The notes below the pieces were generated by a model. It made no database searches. It worked only from the letters and a program-made list of their open reading frames with translations, and had not been told where the DNA came from. A stretch of 64,000 nucleotides of DNA, taken from sequence record NC_048173.1, one strand, 5' to 3'. Of this stretch, positions 3 through 46,765 are shown one piece after another. A program made the position numbers and the translations under genes. Each line of letters starts with the position of its first letter. The stretch's first letter is position 1.

Positions 3-761
3 ACCAAAGCAGCAGTAGAGAATTTCAAAGTGTTGGAAGGGCGTTTAGAATCAGCAATGCGTCTGTATTCAAACAACCTTGCGGTCAAAGAAGTCGAGAA
101 CTTCCGTGACATGCGCTGGGACCAGTATTCCGTTGCCCGTGAACGCTACCGTTTAATGCAACAGGAGCTGGACAAACTCGCGGAACTTGAGAAAGAGCTG
201 GAGCGGTTATTAAAGCACCAACACACTGCCAAGTTAATGGTCACCAGTTTCTCTCCGGAGAAAGGGGTATTGCGTCGTCACTTCTTTAACTCGATTGCGC
301 GCGTCACCGAGATGATGTCCAGTTACATTGAACACGTCTGGGCGTACCCAATGCAGGTGTTGCCGTGTGACATGTCAGAAGGGGATTTGGACTACCGTTT
401 CCCGTATCGCCTGAAAGACAACCCAGAGCCAGTGTTCGATATCTGCAAAGGGTCGGCGGCGCAGCGGGATATCTTTGACCTGACCTTCCGTTTAACAGCG
501 TACCGTTGTTTGGGTCTGAAGCAGTATCCGTTACTGTTAGACGAACCGGGTGCCACCTTCGATGAGGCACACCGTAACGAACTGGTTGACTTCTTGAAGA
601 TGCTGTTAAACTCCGATGAGTTCTCACAAATCATCGTGATTTCTCACAACTCGGAAGTTCACTCGAAACTCGTAGGTGCAGATTACTGCGTACTGGAATC
701 GGAAGGGATTACCCCTCCACCGGTTTATAATCAGAACGTGAAAATAACTTATACCGATTAA
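3..761 (+). CDS. sbcC: SbcC/Rad50-like ABC ATPase, C-terminal part (truncated by window start)
   Basis: Frame is open from the window edge. A coiled coil is followed by a degenerate signature (KGSAAQ), Walker B LLLDEP, D-loop ATFD and H-switch IVISH. Confidence 0.85.
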   Translation, partial: TKAAVENFKVLEGRLESAMRLYSNNLAVKEVENFRDMRWDQYSVARERYRLMQQELDKLAELEKELERLLKHQHTAKLMVTSFSPEKGVLRRHFFNSIARVTEMMSSYIEHVWAYPMQVLPCDMSEGDLDYRFPYRLKDNPEPVFDICKGSAAQRDIFDLTFRLTAYRCLGLKQYPLLLDEPGATFDEAHRNELVDFLKMLLNSDEFSQIIVISHNSEVHSKLVGADYCVLESEGITPPPVYNQNVKITYTD

Positions 762-3923: not shown

Positions 3924-4421
3924 ATGCTATCATTAAAGTTTCTTCGCGAGTCGACTATCGACGGGGATTTGTTCAACGCACCGGAGACGTATAAAGTCGT
4001 TACGGTGAATCAAGTCGGGGCTATGGGTCGGGGCATAGCACTCTCTTGCAAAGAACGTTATCCCAATGTCTATCGGGAGTACCGTAAGGCATGTCGTGAG
4101 AAACTTTATTTCCCCGACGATGTCATGGTGTTCGAAGAGGAGAAGATTATTCTCCTCGCCACTAAAGACGACTGGAAAGCCCCATCCACGGTTGAAATTA
4201 TTACACGTGGGTTATATGGTTTGAGTCGTCAACTCCCGAACCTTAAAGCCTCCATTGCCATTCCGCCGTTAGGAATGGTTAATGGTTGGCTGAAGAAATC
4301 CCAGCGTGCTGAGATTTTTTCTTTGGTCGTTGAACTTTTCCACAAACAAGACTGCAACGTGAGAGTGTACCTCCCGGACGTTTTGTATGAGGAGGTACGT
4401 GAGTTGTACCATTCCAAATAG
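3924..4421 (+). CDS. Macrodomain protein (DarG/Poa1p-like ADP-ribosylhydrolase family)
   Basis: Motifs VTVNQVGAMGRGIA..K.RYP, LATKDDWK and IAIPPLG..NG.L. Confidence 0.85.
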   Translation: MLSLKFLRESTIDGDLFNAPETYKVVTVNQVGAMGRGIALSCKERYPNVYREYRKACREKLYFPDDVMVFEEEKIILLATKDDWKAPSTVEIITRGLYGLSRQLPNLKASIAIPPLGMVNGWLKKSQRAEIFSLVVELFHKQDCNVRVYLPDVLYEEVRELYHSK

Positions 4422-4425
4422 GCAT

Positions 4426-4445
4426 GGATATATATTCTCATTGTG
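4426..4445 (+). promoter_or_regulatory. Early promoter motif variant
   Basis: GGATATATATTCTCATTGTG. Confidence 0.5.
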
Positions 4446-4573
4446 GCTAATAGATTAGTCCGAGAACATCACTTTATTAATTTCCGCAGGAGGCAGACTT
4501 AGGAACACCACGCCATTGGGGTAGTAGCTTTACTACAAACCAGCGTCTATCACTCTCACGAGGAACACGTTAA

Positions 4574-5431
4574 ATGAAACATTTATTTTTAGGCTTAGCA
4601 ATCCTGCTGACAAGCCTGCCCGCATTAGCATCAACATCCACGAGCGCTTCATGGGACCGCCATAAGCAGACGGTAGCCAAAGCAGCACACAAAGTTGGAG
4701 TATCACCCAAATTAGCCACCGCCATTGCCGGCCGTGAATCAGGCGGCAACGCCAAGGCAAGAAATCCACACTCCTCGGCCTCGGGCCTGATGGGAGTCAC
4801 GCGACCGACCGCTCGCACCATGCTGCGTAAATACGGTAAAGAGTTAGGACTCTCCCGTAACGCGGATATCATGAACCCAAAGGTCAACGCGCTGTTAGGG
4901 ACTGTCTATTTGAGAGAAGTCCGTCAGGAAATGAATCAACGCTTGGGTCGTCCAGCCCGGGACCACGAAGTGTATCTTGCATATCACTTTTCTCCCGCAA
5001 AAGCTGAACGCATTATTAAAGCGCGCCCTTCAAAACGCATGGTAGATATCTATCCCTCCGCAGCACGCGGTAACAAGGCATGGTATTACCACAAAGGCGG
5101 AAAGGCGAAGTCTGCCGCTGATGTAATTAGCATGGCACGAAACAAAGTCGGCAAAGAGTCGAAGTATGGTCACGAAGCTGTGTCAATAGCCGAGAATACA
5201 CAGAAGGCTAAAGCCGCTCCTACAACGTTAGCGAGTATGGCTACCACCACACCGGTCTGCATGGCAGACGTGGTATCTGAGTCGTCTCAGCCTCGTGAAC
5301 ACCCTTTATTGGTGAAAGGTACGTTAGGCACAAGCGTGATGTCACGCTGCCGTGACACCTCCACCTTGGACCCGGAGTTTGATACTGCGATGGTGCGGTA
5401 CTCCCTAAAAGAACAGTATTTGCGTTATTAA
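4574..5431 (+). CDS. Secreted lytic transglycosylase (SLT, phiKZ gp144/gp181-like catalytic domain)
   Basis: Signal peptide MKHLFLGLAILLTSLPALA; AIAGRESG catalytic Glu, SSASGLM, NALLGTVYL; aligns by eye with the SLT domain of the tape-measure protein in this window. Confidence 0.85.
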   Translation: MKHLFLGLAILLTSLPALASTSTSASWDRHKQTVAKAAHKVGVSPKLATAIAGRESGGNAKARNPHSSASGLMGVTRPTARTMLRKYGKELGLSRNADIMNPKVNALLGTVYLREVRQEMNQRLGRPARDHEVYLAYHFSPAKAERIIKARPSKRMVDIYPSAARGNKAWYYHKGGKAKSAADVISMARNKVGKESKYGHEAVSIAENTQKAKAAPTTLASMATTTPVCMADVVSESSQPREHPLLVKGTLGTSVMSRCRDTSTLDPEFDTAMVRYSLKEQYLRY

Positions 5432-5444
5432 TCAGGAGCAGACG

Positions 5445-5918
5445 GTGAAACAGAAACAGCCGGCTTATTATCGCCCTATTGCGGAGGCACTACGCCTTAC
5501 CGCGAATCAGGCAGTGAGTCAGACGTTGAAGAGTAACTTTGGCGTGAAGAGCACGTTTTATCGTGTGCATGATTGCCAGCATACGTTAGAGCATGCCTTA
5601 GAACGCCGTCATTTTGACTTTGACACAGCGTACGGATTGCTTTATCTGATGGGTTATCGCCCATCGTTATTAGAAACGGCTGACGGTCATGCGTTGTTGC
5701 TGCTCCCGTCTACGACCTATAACCGAACCATCACACTGGAAATTGCGACTCAGGAAGCGAAAGTGTATCTGGCCAGAACACTGAAGCTCTCTGATGAAAC
5801 GCTTTCTATTAAGAAGCAGTTGGCAGCTTTCGGCGACGGCCGTCAGATTCTGCGCGATACTTCACTTCCACGTGAGAAGTTCTTACTTGAGTACAAACGT
5901 TATGAAGACGCTGCTTGA
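5445..5918 (+). CDS. Hypothetical protein
   Basis: AGGAG RBS before GTG start. Confidence 0.75.
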   Translation: MKQKQPAYYRPIAEALRLTANQAVSQTLKSNFGVKSTFYRVHDCQHTLEHALERRHFDFDTAYGLLYLMGYRPSLLETADGHALLLLPSTTYNRTITLEIATQEAKVYLARTLKLSDETLSIKKQLAAFGDGRQILRDTSLPREKFLLEYKRYEDAA

Positions 5919-21508: not shown

Positions 21509-22525
21509 ATGACTACAATTGACCCGAAAGTAGTACCGTTAACACGCCTCGCAGGACTGTTGAGAGTGTTAACGCTGGGTACGCGCTACGACCAGTCTTG
21601 CCAAGGAGCCGGTAAAGAGAAAGTCATTGCCCGTATCAGACACGATATGCTGTTAGAGCAGGTGTTCCCGTCAAAGTTCGAAGTGGGGATGTCTGAGCTA
21701 ATGCTACTCGAGATTTATAAAACGGGGAAATACGACGCGACGTACGGCGTGGCAATGGCGCAACGTAACGGTTTAAATATACCGAAGGCGAATGCCAATG
21801 ACTACGACGTCACCAAATGCAGTGTGCGGTCACTGAGCCACCATCCCGGTCCTGTTCGTCACGACCGCGATACGGAATTCTTCATTCACATGCGCCGCAT
21901 CGGTGCCGTGCCTATTACGGGTGAGAAAGATGACGGTACTGACGGGGTCAACCATGTCAATATCTATTCGGACGGTCGCACCACAGTAGGTCGCCTGGCA
22001 AGTAATTTCAGTGAGGGTCCGTTTGACACACCCGACGGCACGTTCTTTACGCTCGAAGGCTACTACCACTGGCTGCGCATTCGTGACTGGACACTGGCCA
22101 CCAAATACGCTTTTAACATGGCAGATATGGAAGATACGTATCCGAGCCTACGGAAATTGCGGACCGTAACCGGTACAGAAGCAATTCGCTTAGGGCGCAT
22201 ACTCAAGTCCAACATCTACGGCGGTACGAAATACCGCACGGGGCCGTTCTCGAAAGAGTCGCTGGAGCGTTTTCGTTGGGCGTTGGCCGGAAAGTTACAC
22301 AAGCTGCGTTACAATAATGTGACACTGGGTAATTATTTGTCGATGATGGTGTATTGTGGTTTCACGTTGACGCACTATTACGTGTACAACGGTAAAGTGA
22401 AATACCCGGACTTCCGCGAATGGCTACCTAACTTATTGTCTGGCTTGTTGGAGCATATCGATCCCAATGATTCGGACTTCGATTTAGCCGCGCTACAAGC
22501 GAAAATAACTGAGGGTTCCGTATGA
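21509..22525 (+). CDS. NADAR (YbiA/T4 gp30.3-like) domain protein with N-terminal extension
   Basis: HVNIYS...GRLASNF..PF.TPDG.F.TLEGYYHWLR, EAIRLGR, WALAGKL. Confidence 0.7.
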   Translation: MTTIDPKVVPLTRLAGLLRVLTLGTRYDQSCQGAGKEKVIARIRHDMLLEQVFPSKFEVGMSELMLLEIYKTGKYDATYGVAMAQRNGLNIPKANANDYDVTKCSVRSLSHHPGPVRHDRDTEFFIHMRRIGAVPITGEKDDGTDGVNHVNIYSDGRTTVGRLASNFSEGPFDTPDGTFFTLEGYYHWLRIRDWTLATKYAFNMADMEDTYPSLRKLRTVTGTEAIRLGRILKSNIYGGTKYRTGPFSKESLERFRWALAGKLHKLRYNNVTLGNYLSMMVYCGFTLTHYYVYNGKVKYPDFREWLPNLLSGLLEHIDPNDSDFDLAALQAKITEGSV

Positions 22526-36907: not shown

Positions 36908-39900
36908 ATGTTGCTGATTAAACAGTTTAATAGAATGTTTTCGGTGCGTATGTTGCAAGAGTACGGTGCACCGCGAATTATCTCGCTGGATAAACTTAAA
37001 ATCCCGCGCGGTTCCATTTACCATAGCTTTGACATGTCGGGGGAGATTGCTCCTCCGCAAACCCTGCCGATTCTGGAACTGGAAAAGCCAGCCCAGATTC
37101 GCCACCACGCTAAACTGGCCGCCGAAGGGTTAGTCGGTCGGCCTATCCCGGTCCCGGTGCAGGGACAAGAGCGTACCATTCTGCAGTACCACCGTAACAA
37201 CCGCCAGATGCGCCGCATGAAGTCTGAAGAAGTCATCATGAAGGATATGCGTACCCTGCTGGTTGAGAACTATGCGCCGATTCTGCCACGTTACCGTTAT
37301 GCGGACACCATCTTTGCGTGGTACGACCGCCTGCGTAACCTGATGATTACCATGCGTGACCAGATTGCGGAAGATGCGGCGAAGTTCCCGCGTCAGAACT
37401 ACATCATGATTGATGTGGGCGACACGATGCCGGCCTTCAACCGTTTTCGCAACACCTATGCTGATCGCACGAACAAAGGGAAGATGGAGAACTTCCAGTC
37501 GTGGAACCTGCTGTGGTTGTTAGAGCTGTTTGCTTGGGCCGACGGCGATCGTGACAACTCCCTGATTGGGCAGATGGACATGACCCAACTGTCGCGTATC
37601 AACATTATCCTGACCCACAACCAAGCGTTCACCACCATTAACTTGGGGATGCTGGAACGTCTGCGCGATGGCGATAAAGGCAAGCTGTCTGATGACCAGA
37701 TGGCGCGTCGTTTCTACCGCACCGTTGTGGCAGTGATGACCCAACCCCCAATTCAGAACATCGACACCGACTTCGTGACCCCGCTGGGTGATGAGTTGCA
37801 CGTTGAGCGTCATGACCCGGCTGAAGACATTACCCCGATTCAGGATTTGGACGATTCTGAACTGGAAGCCGAAATTGCCCGTTTCGACCAGCAGATGTTT
37901 GATGCGGAAGAAGAAGTCAAAGTCAGCAAGCCGAAAGAAGACCAGAAACCAACCACCATCGTGGTGGAGAAAGCCATCAGCCACGATGCCATCATTCAGC
38001 AAGAGCTGGATAAATTGGCCGAGGCCGGTCGTCTGTCCGCGAAAGCCTATCAGGTATTGAAAGAAGCACCGGGCAAATTCAAACAGTTGCCGAACCCGTA
38101 CAACCCGAAAGAGACGTACGGCGATGCACTGGTGATTAAAGACGAAGAACTGGAAGTGGTGCCGGAAGTGGTCTTCAAGGATGCCACGCTGGTCGAGGAC
38201 TCTTGGGTCGAGAACACGACGGATGAGATGATTCGTCGCTACAACAAAACCATGCTGCCAAAAGACATCTTAGGCGCAGTTGCTTCATCACAACGTCTGG
38301 GCTTGGTGATTCATGACCACCGGGTTGAGAAAGAGTATGCGGTAACCGGTAACGTTGAGCATCACAGCCTGCGTATTCAGCCGGTGGGTGGCGAACCGAC
38401 GACTGTCCACTTCTCGATGCCGATTCTGGACCGTGACGGGAACTGGCGGGCGAACGGCGTGGACTACACCATGCGTCGTCAGCGTGTGGATATCCCGATC
38501 CGTAAAGTGGCACACGATACCGTGGCCCTGACCACTGCTTACGGTAAGAACTTTGTTACCCGCAGTGAGAAGGTAGTCAACGACTACGGCCGTTGGTTAA
38601 CCAACGAAGTCGTGATTCGTGCCATTGACATCAAAGACACGCACATCAGTGATGCGCGTCTGGCGAACGTGTTTGACCCTGCGTATGTCTTGCCAAAACA
38701 GTACACCATGATGGCCCGCCGTGTGGCGACCTTTAACTCCATGGGGTATATGTGGAACTTCGACGTCAAGAAGATGGACGAGTTCTTCGGCAAAGAAATC
38801 ATGGCGGACATGGCGAAGAAGAAACTTACGCCAGTGGCCAAAGGGAAAGCGGGACAGATCGCAATGGACGATCAGTCTCAACTGTACATTGTCAAAGGCG
38901 ACAAAGTCGAAGCACAGGGTACCCTTACCGACCTGTTGGCTATCGATGCAACCAAAGCGCCGAAGGAAGTCAGCGAGTTGTCTCTCATGGGCAAATCTAT
39001 CTCGCTCGGCTTTGTGTTCTCTTACTATCTGGGCCTAACCGGAATGCTCAAGCACTTCGGGGTTCGCTATGAGGTGCTCCCGCCGGGTCAACGACTTGAC
39101 AAATCTGAGTACGACATGATTATCCGTCTGGCTGACGCGAAGATTGTCGTGATGTGTGACAGCGACCAGCAACGCATGGTCGTCAACGGGATGGACAAGT
39201 ACCTCAAGCACATGACCACGTATACCGAGTCGGAAATGGAGCGTGAGGACGTCTACCTGAACCTGCTCATGGAAGGAGATAAACTGACTGCCCGCTACGT
39301 GAACGAACTGACGCTGATGCGTAAAGGTTTCGTTGATGACATGCACGCCCGTATCCTGCGGCGCATGGGCGAACCTGAAACCTTTATCGGCCTGCTGGAA
39401 CGGGCAAATGAAATGCTGACCAACGACCACACCAAGCCGGAGATTAACGGCGAAGAGATGATGTTCGTGGGCAATGCGCGCTTGGCCTACCATCTGTACG
39501 GGGCACTGGCCAAAGCTAACCGTAACTATCTGAACGCACCGGTTTCACAACGCCGCTTTGAGCTGCCGAATGAACTGGTCTGGGGAGCGATTAACTCCGA
39601 CCCATCTGTGTTGGTAACACAGGGGGCGAACCCAATCCAATCGATTAAAGAAAAAGACGTCATTACCATGGGTGGTACCGGTGGTCGTGACCGTAAGACC
39701 ATGGTGAAGCACACGCGTGCGTTTACCAAGTCAGATTTGGGTGTGGTATCTGGCGACACCGTCGATAACGGTGACGTAGGGATTACCTCCTTCCTGTCGG
39801 CGAATCCACAGTTTGCAACGGTGGACGGGTTGACGAAACCACGGGAATTGGACGGACAACCTATCGGGAGTCTGATGTCGTTTTGTGTTGGGTTGGCGCC

Positions 39901-41065
39901 TGACTCACTTATCGACGATGACAAACGTTGGAACTTCGTGAATATCCAAATGGGGTCTGCACAAGCTGCAGAGGGGCACGTAGTTACTCCTTACCAAACC
40001 GGTCAGGGGAAACTTGTGGCACACCGTACCTCAACCAAACATGCACGCATTCTGGACAAAGACGCAACGGTGTTAGACGTAACGCCTGATGCGATTCGCG
40101 TTCGTTATGCCGACAAGACTGAAGAGTCGTTCCCACTAGGACGCTGGTTCGGAGCACACGAAGGTCAACTCTATCCGCATGACATGGTTACCAATTGGAA
40201 GAAGGGCGACAAGCTCAAAGCCAAAACCGTGATGACGTACAACAGCAAACACTTTGCCCCGGACTACTATAACCCGACGCAAGTCAACTGGAAGAATGGC
40301 GCTTTGGCGACCGTCGTTCTGATAGAGGGTGAAGAGACGTACGAGGACTCCAACGCAATTGACAGTACCATTGCGAAGCAGTTAGAGGCAGAGACAACCA
40401 AACCGAAGGAAGTGGTCATCGGCTTTAACCAGAACATCCTTGAGGTTATCAAAGAGGGCAGTGAGGTGGACATCGATACCATCCTATGCACCTTTAGCGA
40501 CAACCTGTCTGGCGATATGGAGAACTTCTCAGAAGAGTCCGCAGCGACGCTGCATGACTTGAGTGCATTTGCACCGCGTGCTGGCGTGCGTGGTCGAGTG
40601 GACAAAATCGAGATTGTCTATCACGGCGAAATCGAAGAGATGTCTCCGTCTGTCGGTGAGCAGGTTCGTAAGTACGACCGGATACGCAAACGGGAAGCTG
40701 CGGCTTCGAATGAAGAGCTGACCTCCACTGGCGCGGTAACAGGCGATTACCGTGTTGATGGTGTTCCACTGGCGTATCAGTCTGTCTGTGTGAAATTCTA
40801 CATCTCGCATTTAACGGAGATGGCAGCAGGCGATAAAGCGGTGGTAGCGAACCAGCTGAAAACCACGGTGCAGTATCGCATGGTCGGCACGAACGAAACT
40901 TATTCAGGTCGTCCTATCAACGTGTACTTTGGCCGTAACTCGGTTGAAGCACGTATCGTGGGCTCGCTCTACAACATCGGTACGTCGAACTTCATTGCTG
41001 TTGAAAGCGGGAAGAACGTGCTGAAGATTCTTGCCGGGGAGAATATCCCACTGCTGAGAATGTAA
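36908..41065 (+). CDS. rpoB: Virion RNA polymerase beta subunit N-terminal piece (phiKZ gp178-like)
   Basis: 1385 aa; GGTGGR, DNGDVGI, sandwich-barrel-hybrid motifs, YEDSNAI, GDK..VANQLKT, GRNS..AR. Confidence 0.92.
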   Translation: MLLIKQFNRMFSVRMLQEYGAPRIISLDKLKIPRGSIYHSFDMSGEIAPPQTLPILELEKPAQIRHHAKLAAEGLVGRPIPVPVQGQERTILQYHRNNRQMRRMKSEEVIMKDMRTLLVENYAPILPRYRYADTIFAWYDRLRNLMITMRDQIAEDAAKFPRQNYIMIDVGDTMPAFNRFRNTYADRTNKGKMENFQSWNLLWLLELFAWADGDRDNSLIGQMDMTQLSRINIILTHNQAFTTINLGMLERLRDGDKGKLSDDQMARRFYRTVVAVMTQPPIQNIDTDFVTPLGDELHVERHDPAEDITPIQDLDDSELEAEIARFDQQMFDAEEEVKVSKPKEDQKPTTIVVEKAISHDAIIQQELDKLAEAGRLSAKAYQVLKEAPGKFKQLPNPYNPKETYGDALVIKDEELEVVPEVVFKDATLVEDSWVENTTDEMIRRYNKTMLPKDILGAVASSQRLGLVIHDHRVEKEYAVTGNVEHHSLRIQPVGGEPTTVHFSMPILDRDGNWRANGVDYTMRRQRVDIPIRKVAHDTVALTTAYGKNFVTRSEKVVNDYGRWLTNEVVIRAIDIKDTHISDARLANVFDPAYVLPKQYTMMARRVATFNSMGYMWNFDVKKMDEFFGKEIMADMAKKKLTPVAKGKAGQIAMDDQSQLYIVKGDKVEAQGTLTDLLAIDATKAPKEVSELSLMGKSISLGFVFSYYLGLTGMLKHFGVRYEVLPPGQRLDKSEYDMIIRLADAKIVVMCDSDQQRMVVNGMDKYLKHMTTYTESEMEREDVYLNLLMEGDKLTARYVNELTLMRKGFVDDMHARILRRMGEPETFIGLLERANEMLTNDHTKPEINGEEMMFVGNARLAYHLYGALAKANRNYLNAPVSQRRFELPNELVWGAINSDPSVLVTQGANPIQSIKEKDVITMGGTGGRDRKTMVKHTRAFTKSDLGVVSGDTVDNGDVGITSFLSANPQFATVDGLTKPRELDGQPIGSLMSFCVGLAPDSLIDDDKRWNFVNIQMGSAQAAEGHVVTPYQTGQGKLVAHRTSTKHARILDKDATVLDVTPDAIRVRYADKTEESFPLGRWFGAHEGQLYPHDMVTNWKKGDKLKAKTVMTYNSKHFAPDYYNPTQVNWKNGALATVVLIEGEETYEDSNAIDSTIAKQLEAETTKPKEVVIGFNQNILEVIKEGSEVDIDTILCTFSDNLSGDMENFSEESAATLHDLSAFAPRAGVRGRVDKIEIVYHGEIEEMSPSVGEQVRKYDRIRKREAAASNEELTSTGAVTGDYRVDGVPLAYQSVCVKFYISHLTEMAAGDKAVVANQLKTTVQYRMVGTNETYSGRPINVYFGRNSVEARIVGSLYNIGTSNFIAVESGKNVLKILAGENIPLLRM

Positions 41066-43582: not shown

Positions 43583-43597
43583 AATTTGGAGGATTGC

Positions 43598-44401
43598 ATG
43601 GAAAATATGACGTTGCGCTATAACTGCGTAGCGCTGGCCGGGGTCAACAACCCTCAGCAACTGCAGCGTGATGGGGATTACTACCGCGTGCTGTTAGGCG
43701 CACTGAACGTGTTCAACTCTGAGAACATCTTCTACACCTACAACGAATCGAAACACGTGTTCGAGCGTTCCAGTGTGTTCATGCGCAAGATTGCTGCCGG
43801 TAACCTGTTCGGGGAGTGTGACCACCCGGAATGGGCACAGGGTATGACCGAAGCCGAATTCATGGAGCGCAATGAGTGGATTGAAATCACCAACACGGCG
43901 TTCCATATTCGCGACGTGGATGTCATCACGACCGATGAGATGTGCAATGGCCAGCCGGTCGTGGAAATCTGGGGATGGATTAAACCAGAAGACAACGACC
44001 TCGGTCGTCGCCTGCGCGCCGGTCTGGACAACCCGCACCAAAACGTGTGCTTCTCTCTGCGTGCGATTGTACGCCAGGGGGTCATCGGTGGCGTACGTAC
44101 TCGTCGTATCGATAAGCTGGTCACCTTTGACTGGGTTATTGAAGACGGGCTGCGTATCTGTAACAAATACTCCAGCATGGTTCGTGGGTCTACTGTTGCG
44201 CAAGAGTCTACGCGTACGTATATCGACCGCCCAGTGAGTCGTGAAGCGTGTGAGCAATTGATTGCCACGGGTGCCCGACAACTGGCTGTCGCTACGGAGT
44301 CCCGCCGTGCGTCGGTGGTGAGCTCAGCGCGAGAGTACCTCAAAACGATTGACAGTCGTCCTACGGTGAAACATGTTGGCATGGGAGCGAGGGCTTGGTA
44401 A
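43598..44401 (+). CDS. Prohead (head maturation) serine protease (phiKZ gp175-like)
   Basis: GECDHP (His), FSLRA (Ser), VTFDWVIE (Asp); C-terminal AQE/ATE candidate autocleavage sites. Confidence 0.88.
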   Translation: MENMTLRYNCVALAGVNNPQQLQRDGDYYRVLLGALNVFNSENIFYTYNESKHVFERSSVFMRKIAAGNLFGECDHPEWAQGMTEAEFMERNEWIEITNTAFHIRDVDVITTDEMCNGQPVVEIWGWIKPEDNDLGRRLRAGLDNPHQNVCFSLRAIVRQGVIGGVRTRRIDKLVTFDWVIEDGLRICNKYSSMVRGSTVAQESTRTYIDRPVSREACEQLIATGARQLAVATESRRASVVSSAREYLKTIDSRPTVKHVGMGARAW

Positions 44402-45016
44402 ATGGCGTTGTTATCGTCGTTGGAATTATGGCGTAACGGACAGAATCCCAAGCTTTACTCGCGATTGCGGCCTCGCGGGATTGAGACCGCACCTTTGCAC
44501 ATCAGTGCAAACCCTGTTCGTAAATTTATACCTCGTATTCCGTTGTCCTGTGCGCCGGGCGAAGACCAAACGGTCGCTCGTGTCTGTTGTGCATTATCGT
44601 TGGAGAACTGTTTCAAGGGTGCAGCCTGGAATTTCAAAGGAGTCCCTCCGAAGAGATTCCACGTGTATGGTTTCAATGAAGACGCGGTGATTGACCCCAC
44701 CCCGACTCTGACTCAGGAACCGTCTCGGAACGGTGAGGTTTGGATTGTGCCTCACCGTTTATCGAATTGGGATTTAACACCAGAAGCCGTAGGGCAGATG
44801 CGCTTGCATTCGCATACGGAAAATTTGGGTCGCTTTACTTACATCTTGCAGACTTACACGGATGTGATTCTCAATGATGAACAGACCCTCGGCGCGGGGT
44901 GGTGGAAAATCGTTGTCCATTTCAATGGCAATAACGGTATAACCCTATCTTACGACGGGGAATCAAACAGTAATGAATTTGGTAACGCGGCAAATGTTTA
45001 TTCGGTCATTAGCTAG
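44402..45016 (+). CDS. Hypothetical protein, candidate ADP-ribosyltransferase fold
   Basis: LHIS....FIPRIP...ED.T..RVCCALSLENC...FHVY...GEVWI pattern; start codon directly follows the protease stop. Confidence 0.5.
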   Translation: MALLSSLELWRNGQNPKLYSRLRPRGIETAPLHISANPVRKFIPRIPLSCAPGEDQTVARVCCALSLENCFKGAAWNFKGVPPKRFHVYGFNEDAVIDPTPTLTQEPSRNGEVWIVPHRLSNWDLTPEAVGQMRLHSHTENLGRFTYILQTYTDVILNDEQTLGAGWWKIVVHFNGNNGITLSYDGESNSNEFGNAANVYSVIS

Positions 45017-45450: not shown

Positions 45451-46008
45451 ATGAAAAAGATGATACACTTGGACTGCGATGGCGTAATTGCCGACTGGCG
45501 TTTGTATATGGAAACGCACCATTTTAAAGAATTCACTGTGGCGCAATTTAATGCAATGGACCCGTGCCGTCGTAGCACTATCCTGCAAGAAGTGTACCGC
45601 AAAGACAAAGACCTGTTCGCCAAACTGCCGGTAATTCCGAAGATTGGCCGTCTCATTTATCACCTGAACAAAACAGGTGAGCCGTGGGGCATTCTGACGT
45701 CGGCTGGGGAAGACCATCCGGATTATAACCATGCCGCAGAGTCAAAGCGTCAGTGGCTGTATAACCGTTTCGGTATTCCCCGTCACAATGTTATCGTGAC
45801 CGAGAACTCCCATCAGAAAGTACAGTACGCTGACCCGGAGTCGTTATTGATTGATGATTTTGGCCGTAACTGCCGGGAATGGGTAGAGGCAGGCGGTAAA
45901 GCAATTTGGGTACATACCGGTGCGCCTAACGTAGACGCCGTCATTGACGCTGTGGACGACTTTATCCACGACCGTGCCATGTTTACTGAATCCCTGATTA
46001 GCGTCTGA
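45451..46008 (+). CDS. HAD-superfamily 5'(3')-deoxyribonucleotidase-like phosphatase
   Basis: HLDCDGVIADW (motif I), ILTS (II), K (III), LLIDD...N..EW...GG (IV). Confidence 0.88.
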   Translation: MKKMIHLDCDGVIADWRLYMETHHFKEFTVAQFNAMDPCRRSTILQEVYRKDKDLFAKLPVIPKIGRLIYHLNKTGEPWGILTSAGEDHPDYNHAAESKRQWLYNRFGIPRHNVIVTENSHQKVQYADPESLLIDDFGRNCREWVEAGGKAIWVHTGAPNVDAVIDAVDDFIHDRAMFTESLISV

Positions 46009-46096: not shown

Positions 46097-46765
46097 ATGT
46101 CAAGTTTACGTCAGCGAATACTTGATGATGTGGCTGAGTATTATCAACACACTGACCCCGCTCACCGCATAGATCACATTGTGAAGACCATGAACAACGC
46201 AGAGATTCTTTTCGATAAACTGAATCTGCGCCACGATAAAGCATTGATGAAGAAAGTTCTCATTGCGATTGGTTATCACGACGTCTGGTCACAGAACCGT
46301 AAGTATCACCATGTCGATGCGTATTTAGAAGTCTGTAAGCACACGCGTCGTATTCAGGAACATTACGGCATCTCGCAAGAGGATGTCTGGAGGATTGCCC
46401 ATGCCTGCTTGGAACATCGCGCGTCGTTCAAAGGGAAGTACGACTCGATTATCTCGGAGATTACAGCGGCGGCTGACCGCGGCATCCCGAGCTTTGACGT
46501 CGCTTCGCTCTTCTACCGCTCCTATGTCTACGCCCGTGGCATCGGCAAAGTAAGGGAGCTTGCGAAGATACATTGTGTTCAGCACATCAAAGAGAAATAC
46601 GGTGATGGTGGATACGGGGCCGTACCTGCGTGGTACAATGAAAAGTTTGCAGCAGAGTTAGCCCAACGCAAAGTTCTTATTGCTGACTTTACTGTAAACG
46701 ATTTAGACGATAATAAGCTGGATGCGTTAGAAGATGTGATAGCTGGATACCAGCCTGCATCCTAA
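46097..46765 (+). CDS. HD-domain phosphohydrolase
   Basis: DPAHRIDH, IGYHDV, EHRAS, AAADRG. Confidence 0.85.
   Translation: MSSLRQRILDDVAEYYQHTDPAHRIDHIVKTMNNAEILFDKLNLRHDKALMKKVLIAIGYHDVWSQNRKYHHVDAYLEVCKHTRRIQEHYGISQEDVWRIAHACLEHRASFKGKYDSIISEITAAADRGIPSFDVASLFYRSYVYARGIGKVRELAKIHCVQHIKEKYGDGGYGAVPAWYNEKFAAELAQRKVLIADFTVNDLDDNKLDALEDVIAGYQPAS

Follow-up and report, generated by a model that had tools for sequence, protein, structure and literature searches.

What does the small gene lodged directly behind the prohead protease gene of a jumbo phage encode, and what might its product do in the phage head? The gene in question is the open reading frame (ORF) 44402-45016 on the plus strand of a 64,000-nucleotide stretch of record NC_048173.1 (hereafter the window), which is the end of the 223,950-bp genome of an Erwinia jumbo phage. 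The ORF is complete (204 amino acids plus stop), starts at the first possible position in its frame, and its ATG (44402-44404) directly abuts the TAA of the protease gene (44399-44401), as had been pointed out in an original prediction made from the letters alone, which also proposed that the product is an ADP-ribosyltransferase (ART). It is a genuine gene, because a 100% identical coding sequence is annotated in the Erwinia phages EarlPhillipIV (gp222) and Derbicus, an ortholog with 45% identity exists in SPN3US (gp246), and peptides of the orthologs were recovered from virions of SPN3US and Goslar; the homolog in Cronobacter phage CR5 shares 93% identity. As detailed below, its first 155 residues very likely adopt an ART fold, published data support low-copy packaging in the capsid, and an active enzyme packaged in the head is, on balance, the probable explanation for the whole.

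The argument starts from the predicted structure. AlphaFold2 was run with the family alignment and gave a full-length model with a pLDDT of 93.7 and a pTM of 0.89, while residues 1-160 alone reached a pLDDT of 94.5. The order of the modelled elements (strand 1, strand 2, helix, strand 3, strand 4, loop, strand 5, strands 6/7) fits the split beta-sheet core of ARTs. The model of residues 1-160 was compared with 48,161 PDB representatives using VIA-align, and the 50 best rows were judged by their titles: 184 chains were found at Z ≥ 2, and at least 40 of these 50 best rows are entries of the ART superfamily. The best row was Scabin (Z 6.0, rmsd 3.9, 123 residues, N-terminal helix included), followed by TreX (5.5), mouse Tpt1 (5.3), the RES toxin of an Xre-RES pair (5.2), MTX (5.2), LT (5.1) and pertussis toxin S1 (5.0), the last two aligned over residues ~27-154, and ParT (4.9). 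Lower rows comprised Pierisin, PltA, NatT, MbcT, CARDS toxin, diphtheria toxin, Arr and DarT, with tankyrase and other PARPs, exotoxin A (ExoA), Tne2 and HopU1 also among them. The full-length model returned the same ART-dominated pattern at slightly lower Z. Structure prediction had been proposed as the check that would tell whether the protein is ART-like, and for residues 1-160 it retrieved chains of this superfamily near-exclusively.

Conservation in the family points the same way. Residues were counted in 111 aligned family members, and a second alignment comprised eight distant members (18-44% identity, including phiKZ gp283 and Goslar gp211). In the latter H33, S35, P44, E54, R60, Y89, E112, W114 and G131 are invariant; among the 111 members P44, R60, E112 and W114 are kept without exception, and H33, E54, D55, P99 and G131 are near-invariant. 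The motifs that had been read from the sequence fall where an ART core would have them in the AlphaFold2 model: LHIS, read as strand 1 with its His, forms strand 32-35 with H33; FIPRIP, read as a loop, lies within loop 36-59 and holds P44; RVCCALSLENC, read as strand 2 plus a helix, corresponds to strand 60-64 and helix 67-73; FHVY, placed next in the core order, is in strand 85-90 with Y89; and GEVWI, which was said to carry the candidate catalytic Glu, forms strand 112-115, with E112 as its first residue after a loop and the helix 100-111. The family thereby shows the features of the H-Y-[EDQ] clade of ARTs, namely H-x-[ST] in strand 1, a Tyr in strand 3 and an acidic residue that opens strand 5. 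The starts of the structural alignments were also considered. The alignments with LT/CT begin at model residue 30 or 29, opposite residue 4 or 3 of the chain, which puts H33 on R7; for pertussis toxin/PltA, 26 or 27 pairs with 2 or 3, which puts it on R9; and for diphtheria toxin, 17 pairs with 5, which puts it on H21. R7, R9 and H21 are the known strand-1 catalytic residues of the respective toxins, and from these offsets we infer that H33 probably occupies the same position. The start of the Arr alignment places H33 one off from H19.

Packaging was assessed from published proteomics of the orthologs SPN3US gp246 and Goslar gp211. For the SPN3US protein (23.9 kDa), spectral counts were 32, 39, 28 and 39 in purified particles that two amber mutants had formed on permissive and non-permissive hosts (PMC5105663 Table S4), and the particles in which it was found include tailless heads and particles without the whole virion RNA polymerase (vRNAP; PMC5105663). 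In another study it was classed as 'Head', with 0.92 spectra per kDa (SC/M) vs 0.93 for the portal, which is present in 12 copies, and with a coverage of 61%; it peaked in the gel slice matching the uncut 23.9 kDa and does not figure in the set of eight head proteins that the protease processes (PMC5694885). The assignment to 'Head' was repeated in a 2023 dataset (PMC10052503). For Goslar gp211, four peptides came from virions purified on CsCl, and its copy number per virion was estimated at ~3-8 (10.64898/2026.04.21.720040). In the 204-aa window protein itself no AQE/ATE motif was found. Evidence from the orthologs, in purified virions of both phages and in tailless heads for gp246, supports the packaging of the protein in the capsid at low copy; packaging as such had been anticipated from the position of its gene in the operon.

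Taken together, we favour an active, NAD+-using enzyme of ART fold and H-Y-E type that is packaged in the head, a reading that as a whole we hold to be somewhat more probable than its negation. The inferred parts of it are that NAD+ is used, in a transfer and not a hydrolysis, that the protein is ejected, and what it acts on. The gene would be expressed with the head and vRNAP genes, its translation coupled to that of the prohead protease, and a handful of copies would be built into the capsid. NAD+ would be bound in the cleft between the two half-sheets, with the ADP-ribose and phosphates held by H33 and S35 of strand 1 and R60 of strand 2, and the nicotinamide stacked on Y89 of strand 3; E112 at the start of strand 5 would then activate the C1'' of the ribose for transfer to the acceptor. 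Most likely the protein would leave the head with the DNA and the vRNAP, and a host macromolecule (protein or nucleic acid) would be modified at the onset of infection. Members of the H-Y-E clade modify proteins, DNA, RNA and small molecules, and for this reason the target cannot be derived from the clade. The C-terminal extension, which is missing from the short phiKZ gp283, might serve in capsid incorporation or target binding, both of which are guesses. The features of the locus are compiled in Table 1.

Table 1. Features of the gene, its product and its upstream neighbours (positions refer to the window; residues to the 204-aa protein)
Feature	Position	Strand	Basis or remarks
ART-fold domain (very likely), residues 1-155	44402-44866	+	AlphaFold2 models; structural matches mostly ART-superfamily
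Predicted elements of the ART-fold domain: N-terminal helix, strand 32-35, strand 60-64, helices 67-78, strand 85-90, strand 95-99, strand 112-115, hairpin 128-151			
C-terminal extension, residues 156-204	44867-45013	+	acidic (pI 4.2), beta hairpin, motif G166-[YW]-[YW]
H33-I34-S35, H-x-S motif of strand 1	44498-44506	+	H33 110/111, S35 92/111
E54-D55-Q-T57-V-A-R60, conserved acidic loop and Arg opening strand 2	44561-44581	+	E54 107/111, D55 103/111, R60 111/111
Y89, strand 3, candidate nicotinamide-stacking Tyr	44666-44668	+	96/111; invariant in the eight distant members
E112-V-W114, start of strand 5	44735-44743	+	E112 and W114 each 111/111; E112 is the candidate catalytic Glu
GAGGG, putative Shine-Dalgarno sequence	44389-44393	+	8 nt 5' of the ATG, within the 3' end of the protease gene; from sequence
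Prohead (head maturation) protease	43586-44401	+	Pfam Peptidase_S80 1.2e-71; PHROG 3014
Virion RNA polymerase subunit	36908-41065		upstream of the protease gene

Several observations weigh against this reading, and some of them concern the fold itself. The structural scores are modest: even the best Z lies in a range where chance or unrelated folds also score. Foldseek, which had been suggested as a further check, was run with both models against the PDB: its top-probability rows are ARTs (EcPltA 0.66, pertussis and cholera toxin 0.51, Arr 0.38), but none was found at E ≤ 0.001 and E never fell below 0.1. Since chance could produce absolute scores of this size, what speaks for the fold is that one superfamily is enriched almost to the exclusion of others and that the matches cover the whole domain. 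That H33, Y89 and E112 cluster in space, and their equivalences to residues of known enzymes, are derived from secondary structure and alignment ranges only, and the strand-1 motif of the family is H-[ILM]-S, while the usual form, known from diphtheria toxin, PARP and Arr, is H-G-[ST]. At the sequence level, Pfam gave no match at all for the 204-aa protein and no ART family in any of the 111 relatives, among which the sole recurrent match was DUF6886 (two members, E 0.04). Searches of PDB sequences with hmmsearch (family profile) and phmmer returned chance matches only (Cry8Ba2 0.32, lipocalin 0.86). The Arr HMM PF12120 had no match in the phage genome at E ≤ 10, and hhalign of the family profile with 13 Arr sequences from Bacillota genomes gave a probability of 0.4, which is a weak negative given how shallow the Arr alignment is (Neff ~2). 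The short copy in phiKZ, gp283, is encoded remote from the head genes, and in the literature on gp283 no relevant report and no virion evidence were found.

Part of the same evidence feeds the foremost alternative, a non-catalytic head protein (an assembly, scaffold-like or DNA-associated factor) that retains an ART-like scaffold and whose invariant residues serve folding or binding. Structural Z values of just 4-6, with no sequence profile to connect the family to active ARTs, are what such a protein could give; its gene lies in the head block and the protein in the capsid, and ART-like folds for which no transferase activity has been demonstrated (AvrPphF ORF2, CC0527) are among the structural matches. 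We nevertheless regard it as unlikely. A strand-1 His, a strand-3 Tyr and a strand-5 Glu that are invariant at 18-44% identity make up the H-Y-E catalytic signature and are hard to attribute to folding, about 5-12 copies per virion are few for a structural component, and SPN3US gp246 is not among the amber-defined essential head genes in the SPN3US literature, which counts as weak evidence.

If the protein is an ART-fold enzyme, as we prefer to think, the next question is to which branch of the superfamily it belongs. The language-model neighbourhood in the ESM Atlas points to Arr: each of the 30 closest clusters that bear a name is an Arr-ms rifampin ADP-ribosyltransferase (scores 0.94-0.95). 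Known families were nevertheless rejected one after another. For Arr there was no PF12120 match and the hhalign probability was the low one given above, so that the ESM Atlas neighbourhood and a structural Z of 3.8 were the only pointers. For Tpt1/KptA (PF01885) there was no Pfam match, position 32 is L/Y/F, and the tetrad is absent, R60 being the sole invariant Arg. RES toxins (PF08808) had no Pfam match in the protein or its 111 relatives, strand 1 carries His and not Arg, and their Z of 5.2 is tied with that of other ARTs. DarT (PF14487) had no Pfam match and its entries reached Z 3.2-3.6 only. The R-S-E type of T4 Alt/ModA/ModB is set aside by His33, Tyr89 and E112-x-W114, which the family has instead. 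The sequence-level searches being negative, the family is placed outside Arr, Tpt1/KptA, RES, DarT and Alt/Mod; it fits a separate, sequence-orphan branch of putative ARTs with the signature H-x-S...R...Y...E-x-W, compatible with the H-Y-[EDQ] clade.

The same set of matches raises the possibility of a different chemistry, either an NAD+ glycohydrolase/phosphorylase of the RES/MbcT/Tne2 kind, which would draw down the NAD+ of the host, or an enzyme that, like Arr, has a small molecule as its ADP-ribose acceptor. We consider this improbable. Xre-RES (Z 5.2), VPA0770 (4.8), NatT (4.5), MbcT (4.3) and Tne2 do occur among the structural matches and the nearest named neighbours in the language model belong to Arr, a small-molecule ART, but the RES rows are tied in Z with true transferases, the R-E-S residues of RES are unmatched (strand 1 has His, not Arg), and neither the RES nor the Arr family was matched in Pfam. 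A few molecules per virion would, moreover, seem insufficient for the depletion of NAD+ unless their turnover was very high.

The family and its genomic surroundings were examined for further indications of the role of the proposed head-delivered enzyme. The 204-aa protein matches PHROG 5043 over residues 3-203 (E = 5.4e-79), the function of which is listed as unknown. With a family profile, 748 relatives at E ≤ 0.001, mostly of 220-250 aa, were recovered from 1.84 billion representatives of clusters defined at 50% identity, vs only nine with a word-based search. Members of the PHROG 5043 type are found in SPN3US-like and Derbicus-like phages, Goslar (gp211), Agrican-like Erwinia phages, jumbo phages of Serratia, Klebsiella and Vibrio, Pseudomonas phage Noxifer, and phiKZ (gp283, only 154 aa); the genome of the window's phage has a single copy. 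Between the protease gene and the vRNAP subunit gene upstream of it lie the genes for a PHROG 3841 protein and for the vRNAP beta'C subunit (PHROG 2926), a homolog of SPN3US gp244 (PMC5105663). The GAGGG falls within the protease gene and 8 nt short of the ATG, which implies that translation of the 204-aa ORF may be coupled to that of the protease gene. The order protease, then PHROG 5043, abutting or almost so, is common to the window's phage and SPN3US, and in Goslar the gp211 gene is placed between vRNAP beta'C and the protease. On a distant 118-kb jumbo-phage contig binned with a Clostridium sp. metagenome-assembled genome (NZ_JBOGCC010000278.1), a tandem pair of PHROG 5043 genes (4348-5669; 218 and 222 aa) comes directly after the block vRNAP beta, PHROG 3841, beta'C and protease, the arrangement known from the window, at 21-24% identity; both copies retain H, S, E, R, Y and E-x-W. 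Synteny with the protease and vRNAP genes was rejected as a universal trait: a helicase gene adjoins the PHROG 5043 gene in two metagenomic jumbo phages, and phiKZ gp283 is set among small genes of unknown function.

Some longer relatives carry additional domains. The relatives P0057 and P0083 have an HNH_3 domain (HNH endonuclease) and are probably merged with homing-endonuclease genes, P0101 has a Pol-beta nucleotidyltransferase N-terminus, and one weak YoeB match was seen among the longer relatives; the BFVD entry A0A8S5PQ72 (785 aa, 'Acetyltransferase') is a PHROG 5043 relative that is possibly fused to GNAT. Such additional domains (HNH, nucleotidyltransferase, possibly GNAT) may be true fusions or merges in gene calling and are uninformative on function.

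At the other end of the window, the plus-strand gene 3924-4421 encodes a 165-aa macrodomain protein of the DarG/TARG1-like type. It matched the PDB sequences of Mycobacterium tuberculosis DarG (5m3i, 7e-19), Thermus DarG (5m31, 7.5e-16) and DarTG (7omu, 4.7e-9), while the Pfam Macro score (16 bits) was below the cut-off. Homologs occur in phiKZ (at 107.5 kb), Goslar, SPN3US and two other jumbo phages. With high probability it is orthologous to AdfM (PhiKZ gp104), a factor that counters DarT2. AdfM was shown in 2026 to be a nucleus-localised DarG2-like macrodomain that strips the ADP-ribose added by DarT2 from phiKZ DNA (PMC13309987).

Members of the H-Y-E clade such as DarT, Tpt1 and the PARPs often target nucleic acids, which together with the linkage of the gene to vRNAP, protease and head genes in four lineages, the presence of the protein in the head, and a phage-encoded macrodomain of the AdfM type that removes ADP-ribose from DNA (PMC13309987) would suit an enzyme acting on components of the phage itself, for instance DNA ends, RNA or head proteins (e.g., of the vRNAP or the inner body), within the capsid, the early vesicle or during assembly. 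This is also improbable in our view, as SPN3US gp246 is incorporated without need of the vRNAP, the availability of NAD+ in the capsid is doubtful, and the restriction of phiKZ lacking AdfM is confined to hosts with DarTG2 (PMC13309987), which argues against self-inflicted ADP-ribosylation of DNA, at least in phiKZ.

A nucleic-acid-directed version of the head-delivered enzyme can be formulated as well, in which host DNA or RNA would be marked or blocked by the ART as soon as it is injected and the AdfM macrodomain would also clear the phage genome of the mark. We rate it as quite improbable; were it true, the ART and AdfM would form an offensive, phage-borne counterpart of DarT/DarG, conserved across nucleus-forming jumbo phages. 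Finally, a Tpt1/KptA-like RNA 2'-phosphotransferase in RNA repair, for which the rank of mouse Tpt1 as third among the structural matches (Z 5.3, rmsd 3.2, 91 residues), the other Tpt1 entries, and the KptA-family ARTs reported for RNA repair in jumbo phages (PMC7824862) could be quoted, is very improbable, given that the Arg-His-Arg-Arg tetrad is absent (L/Y/F at position 32, only R60 invariant), that the invariant strand-5 Glu of the family is not found in Tpt1, and that there is no Pfam PTS_2-RNA match and a head location would be unexpected for a repair enzyme.

Other genes of the window were annotated in passing. Downstream of the 204-aa ORF, 45451-46008 (+) encodes an NT5C-like 5'(3')-deoxyribonucleotidase/HAD protein (Pfam NT5C 1.5e-05; PHROG 420/2643). 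Its positional counterpart SPN3US gp248 (21 kDa) is present in purified virions and tailless heads (PMC5105663) and is classified as 'Head' (PMC10052503), so this nucleotidase-like enzyme also appears to be packaged in the capsid. Two genes 3' of it, 46097-46765 (+) encodes an HD-domain protein (Pfam HD 0.0024, below the cut-off; PHROG 3921), whose counterparts in EarlPhillipIV and SPN3US are annotated as 'putative HD domain protein'. A NADAR-like reading of 21509-22525 (+) was rejected, as neither this ORF nor its two neighbours had a Pfam match at E ≤ 0.01 and PF08719 was not found genome-wide at E ≤ 1.

No published assignment of an ART fold or function was found for SPN3US gp246, Goslar gp211, phiKZ gp283 or PHROG 5043, and the ART assignment of PHROG 5043 appears to be unpublished. 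The jumbo-phage survey of Iyer et al. (PMC7824862) states that ARTs occur most often in phages that lack an RNA polymerase of their own, and PHROG 5043 is not named in the text considered here. An ART assignment would give a meaning to entries that are now labelled 'hypothetical' (PHROG 5043, SPN3US gp246, Goslar gp211 and phiKZ gp283), and it would add to the ART superfamily a sequence-orphan family of 748 representatives at 50% identity without a Pfam model. To our knowledge, almost none of the proteins that nucleus-forming jumbo phages co-inject has a known activity, apart from the vRNAP. A conserved, low-copy capsid protein with a predicted ART fold is therefore a testable candidate for an early enzymatic effector that would modify the host in an NAD+-dependent manner, and genetic systems are available for SPN3US (amber mutants), phiKZ and Goslar.

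Among known systems, the closest to the PHROG 5043 protein are its true orthologs SPN3US gp246 and Goslar gp211, which have a similar gene neighbourhood and are labelled 'Head' or 'hypothetical' in the literature. The toxins that gave the best structural matches, Scabin/Pierisin-1/MTX and the cholera/LT/pertussis group, share 8-13% sequence identity with it and are of the R-S-E or R-S-QxE type, with Arg in strand 1 and S-T-S in strand 3, where the window protein has His and Tyr. Arr (PF12120) resembles it more in its layout, as both have a minimal ART domain of ~140-150 residues (predicted in the case of the phage protein) with His-x-[ST] in strand 1, Tyr in strand 3 and an acid in strand 5; this likeness comes with a structural Z of 3.8 and a Foldseek probability of 0.38, without profile similarity. 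The catalytic acid is Asp in Arr and a candidate Glu here, their spacing differs, and beyond Arr the window family has an N-terminal helix, the invariant E54/R60 segment and a C-terminal hairpin domain.

The idea of an ART carried in a phage capsid is already familiar from T4 Alt, to which the protein had been likened in the original prediction. The two would share the ART superfamily fold, both are low-copy head-carried phage proteins that are encoded or assembled with head components (as judged from the orthologs for PHROG 5043), and the proposed role, a modification of host targets right at infection, is alike. In this respect the analogy stands, while at the level of the enzyme it does not: Alt is of the R-S-E clade, has ~76 kDa and is cleaved by the T4 prohead protease (PMC5694885), whereas the window protein has 23 kDa and the H-Y-E signature, and its ortholog SPN3US gp246 does not appear in the list of protease-processed head proteins. 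The likeness is functional only. Unlike T4, the phage of the window brings its own virion RNA polymerase, so that a retargeting of the host RNA polymerase would be unneeded. What would be new in comparison with Alt is a head-delivered enzyme of a different clade, left unprocessed, in phages that carry an RNA polymerase of their own.

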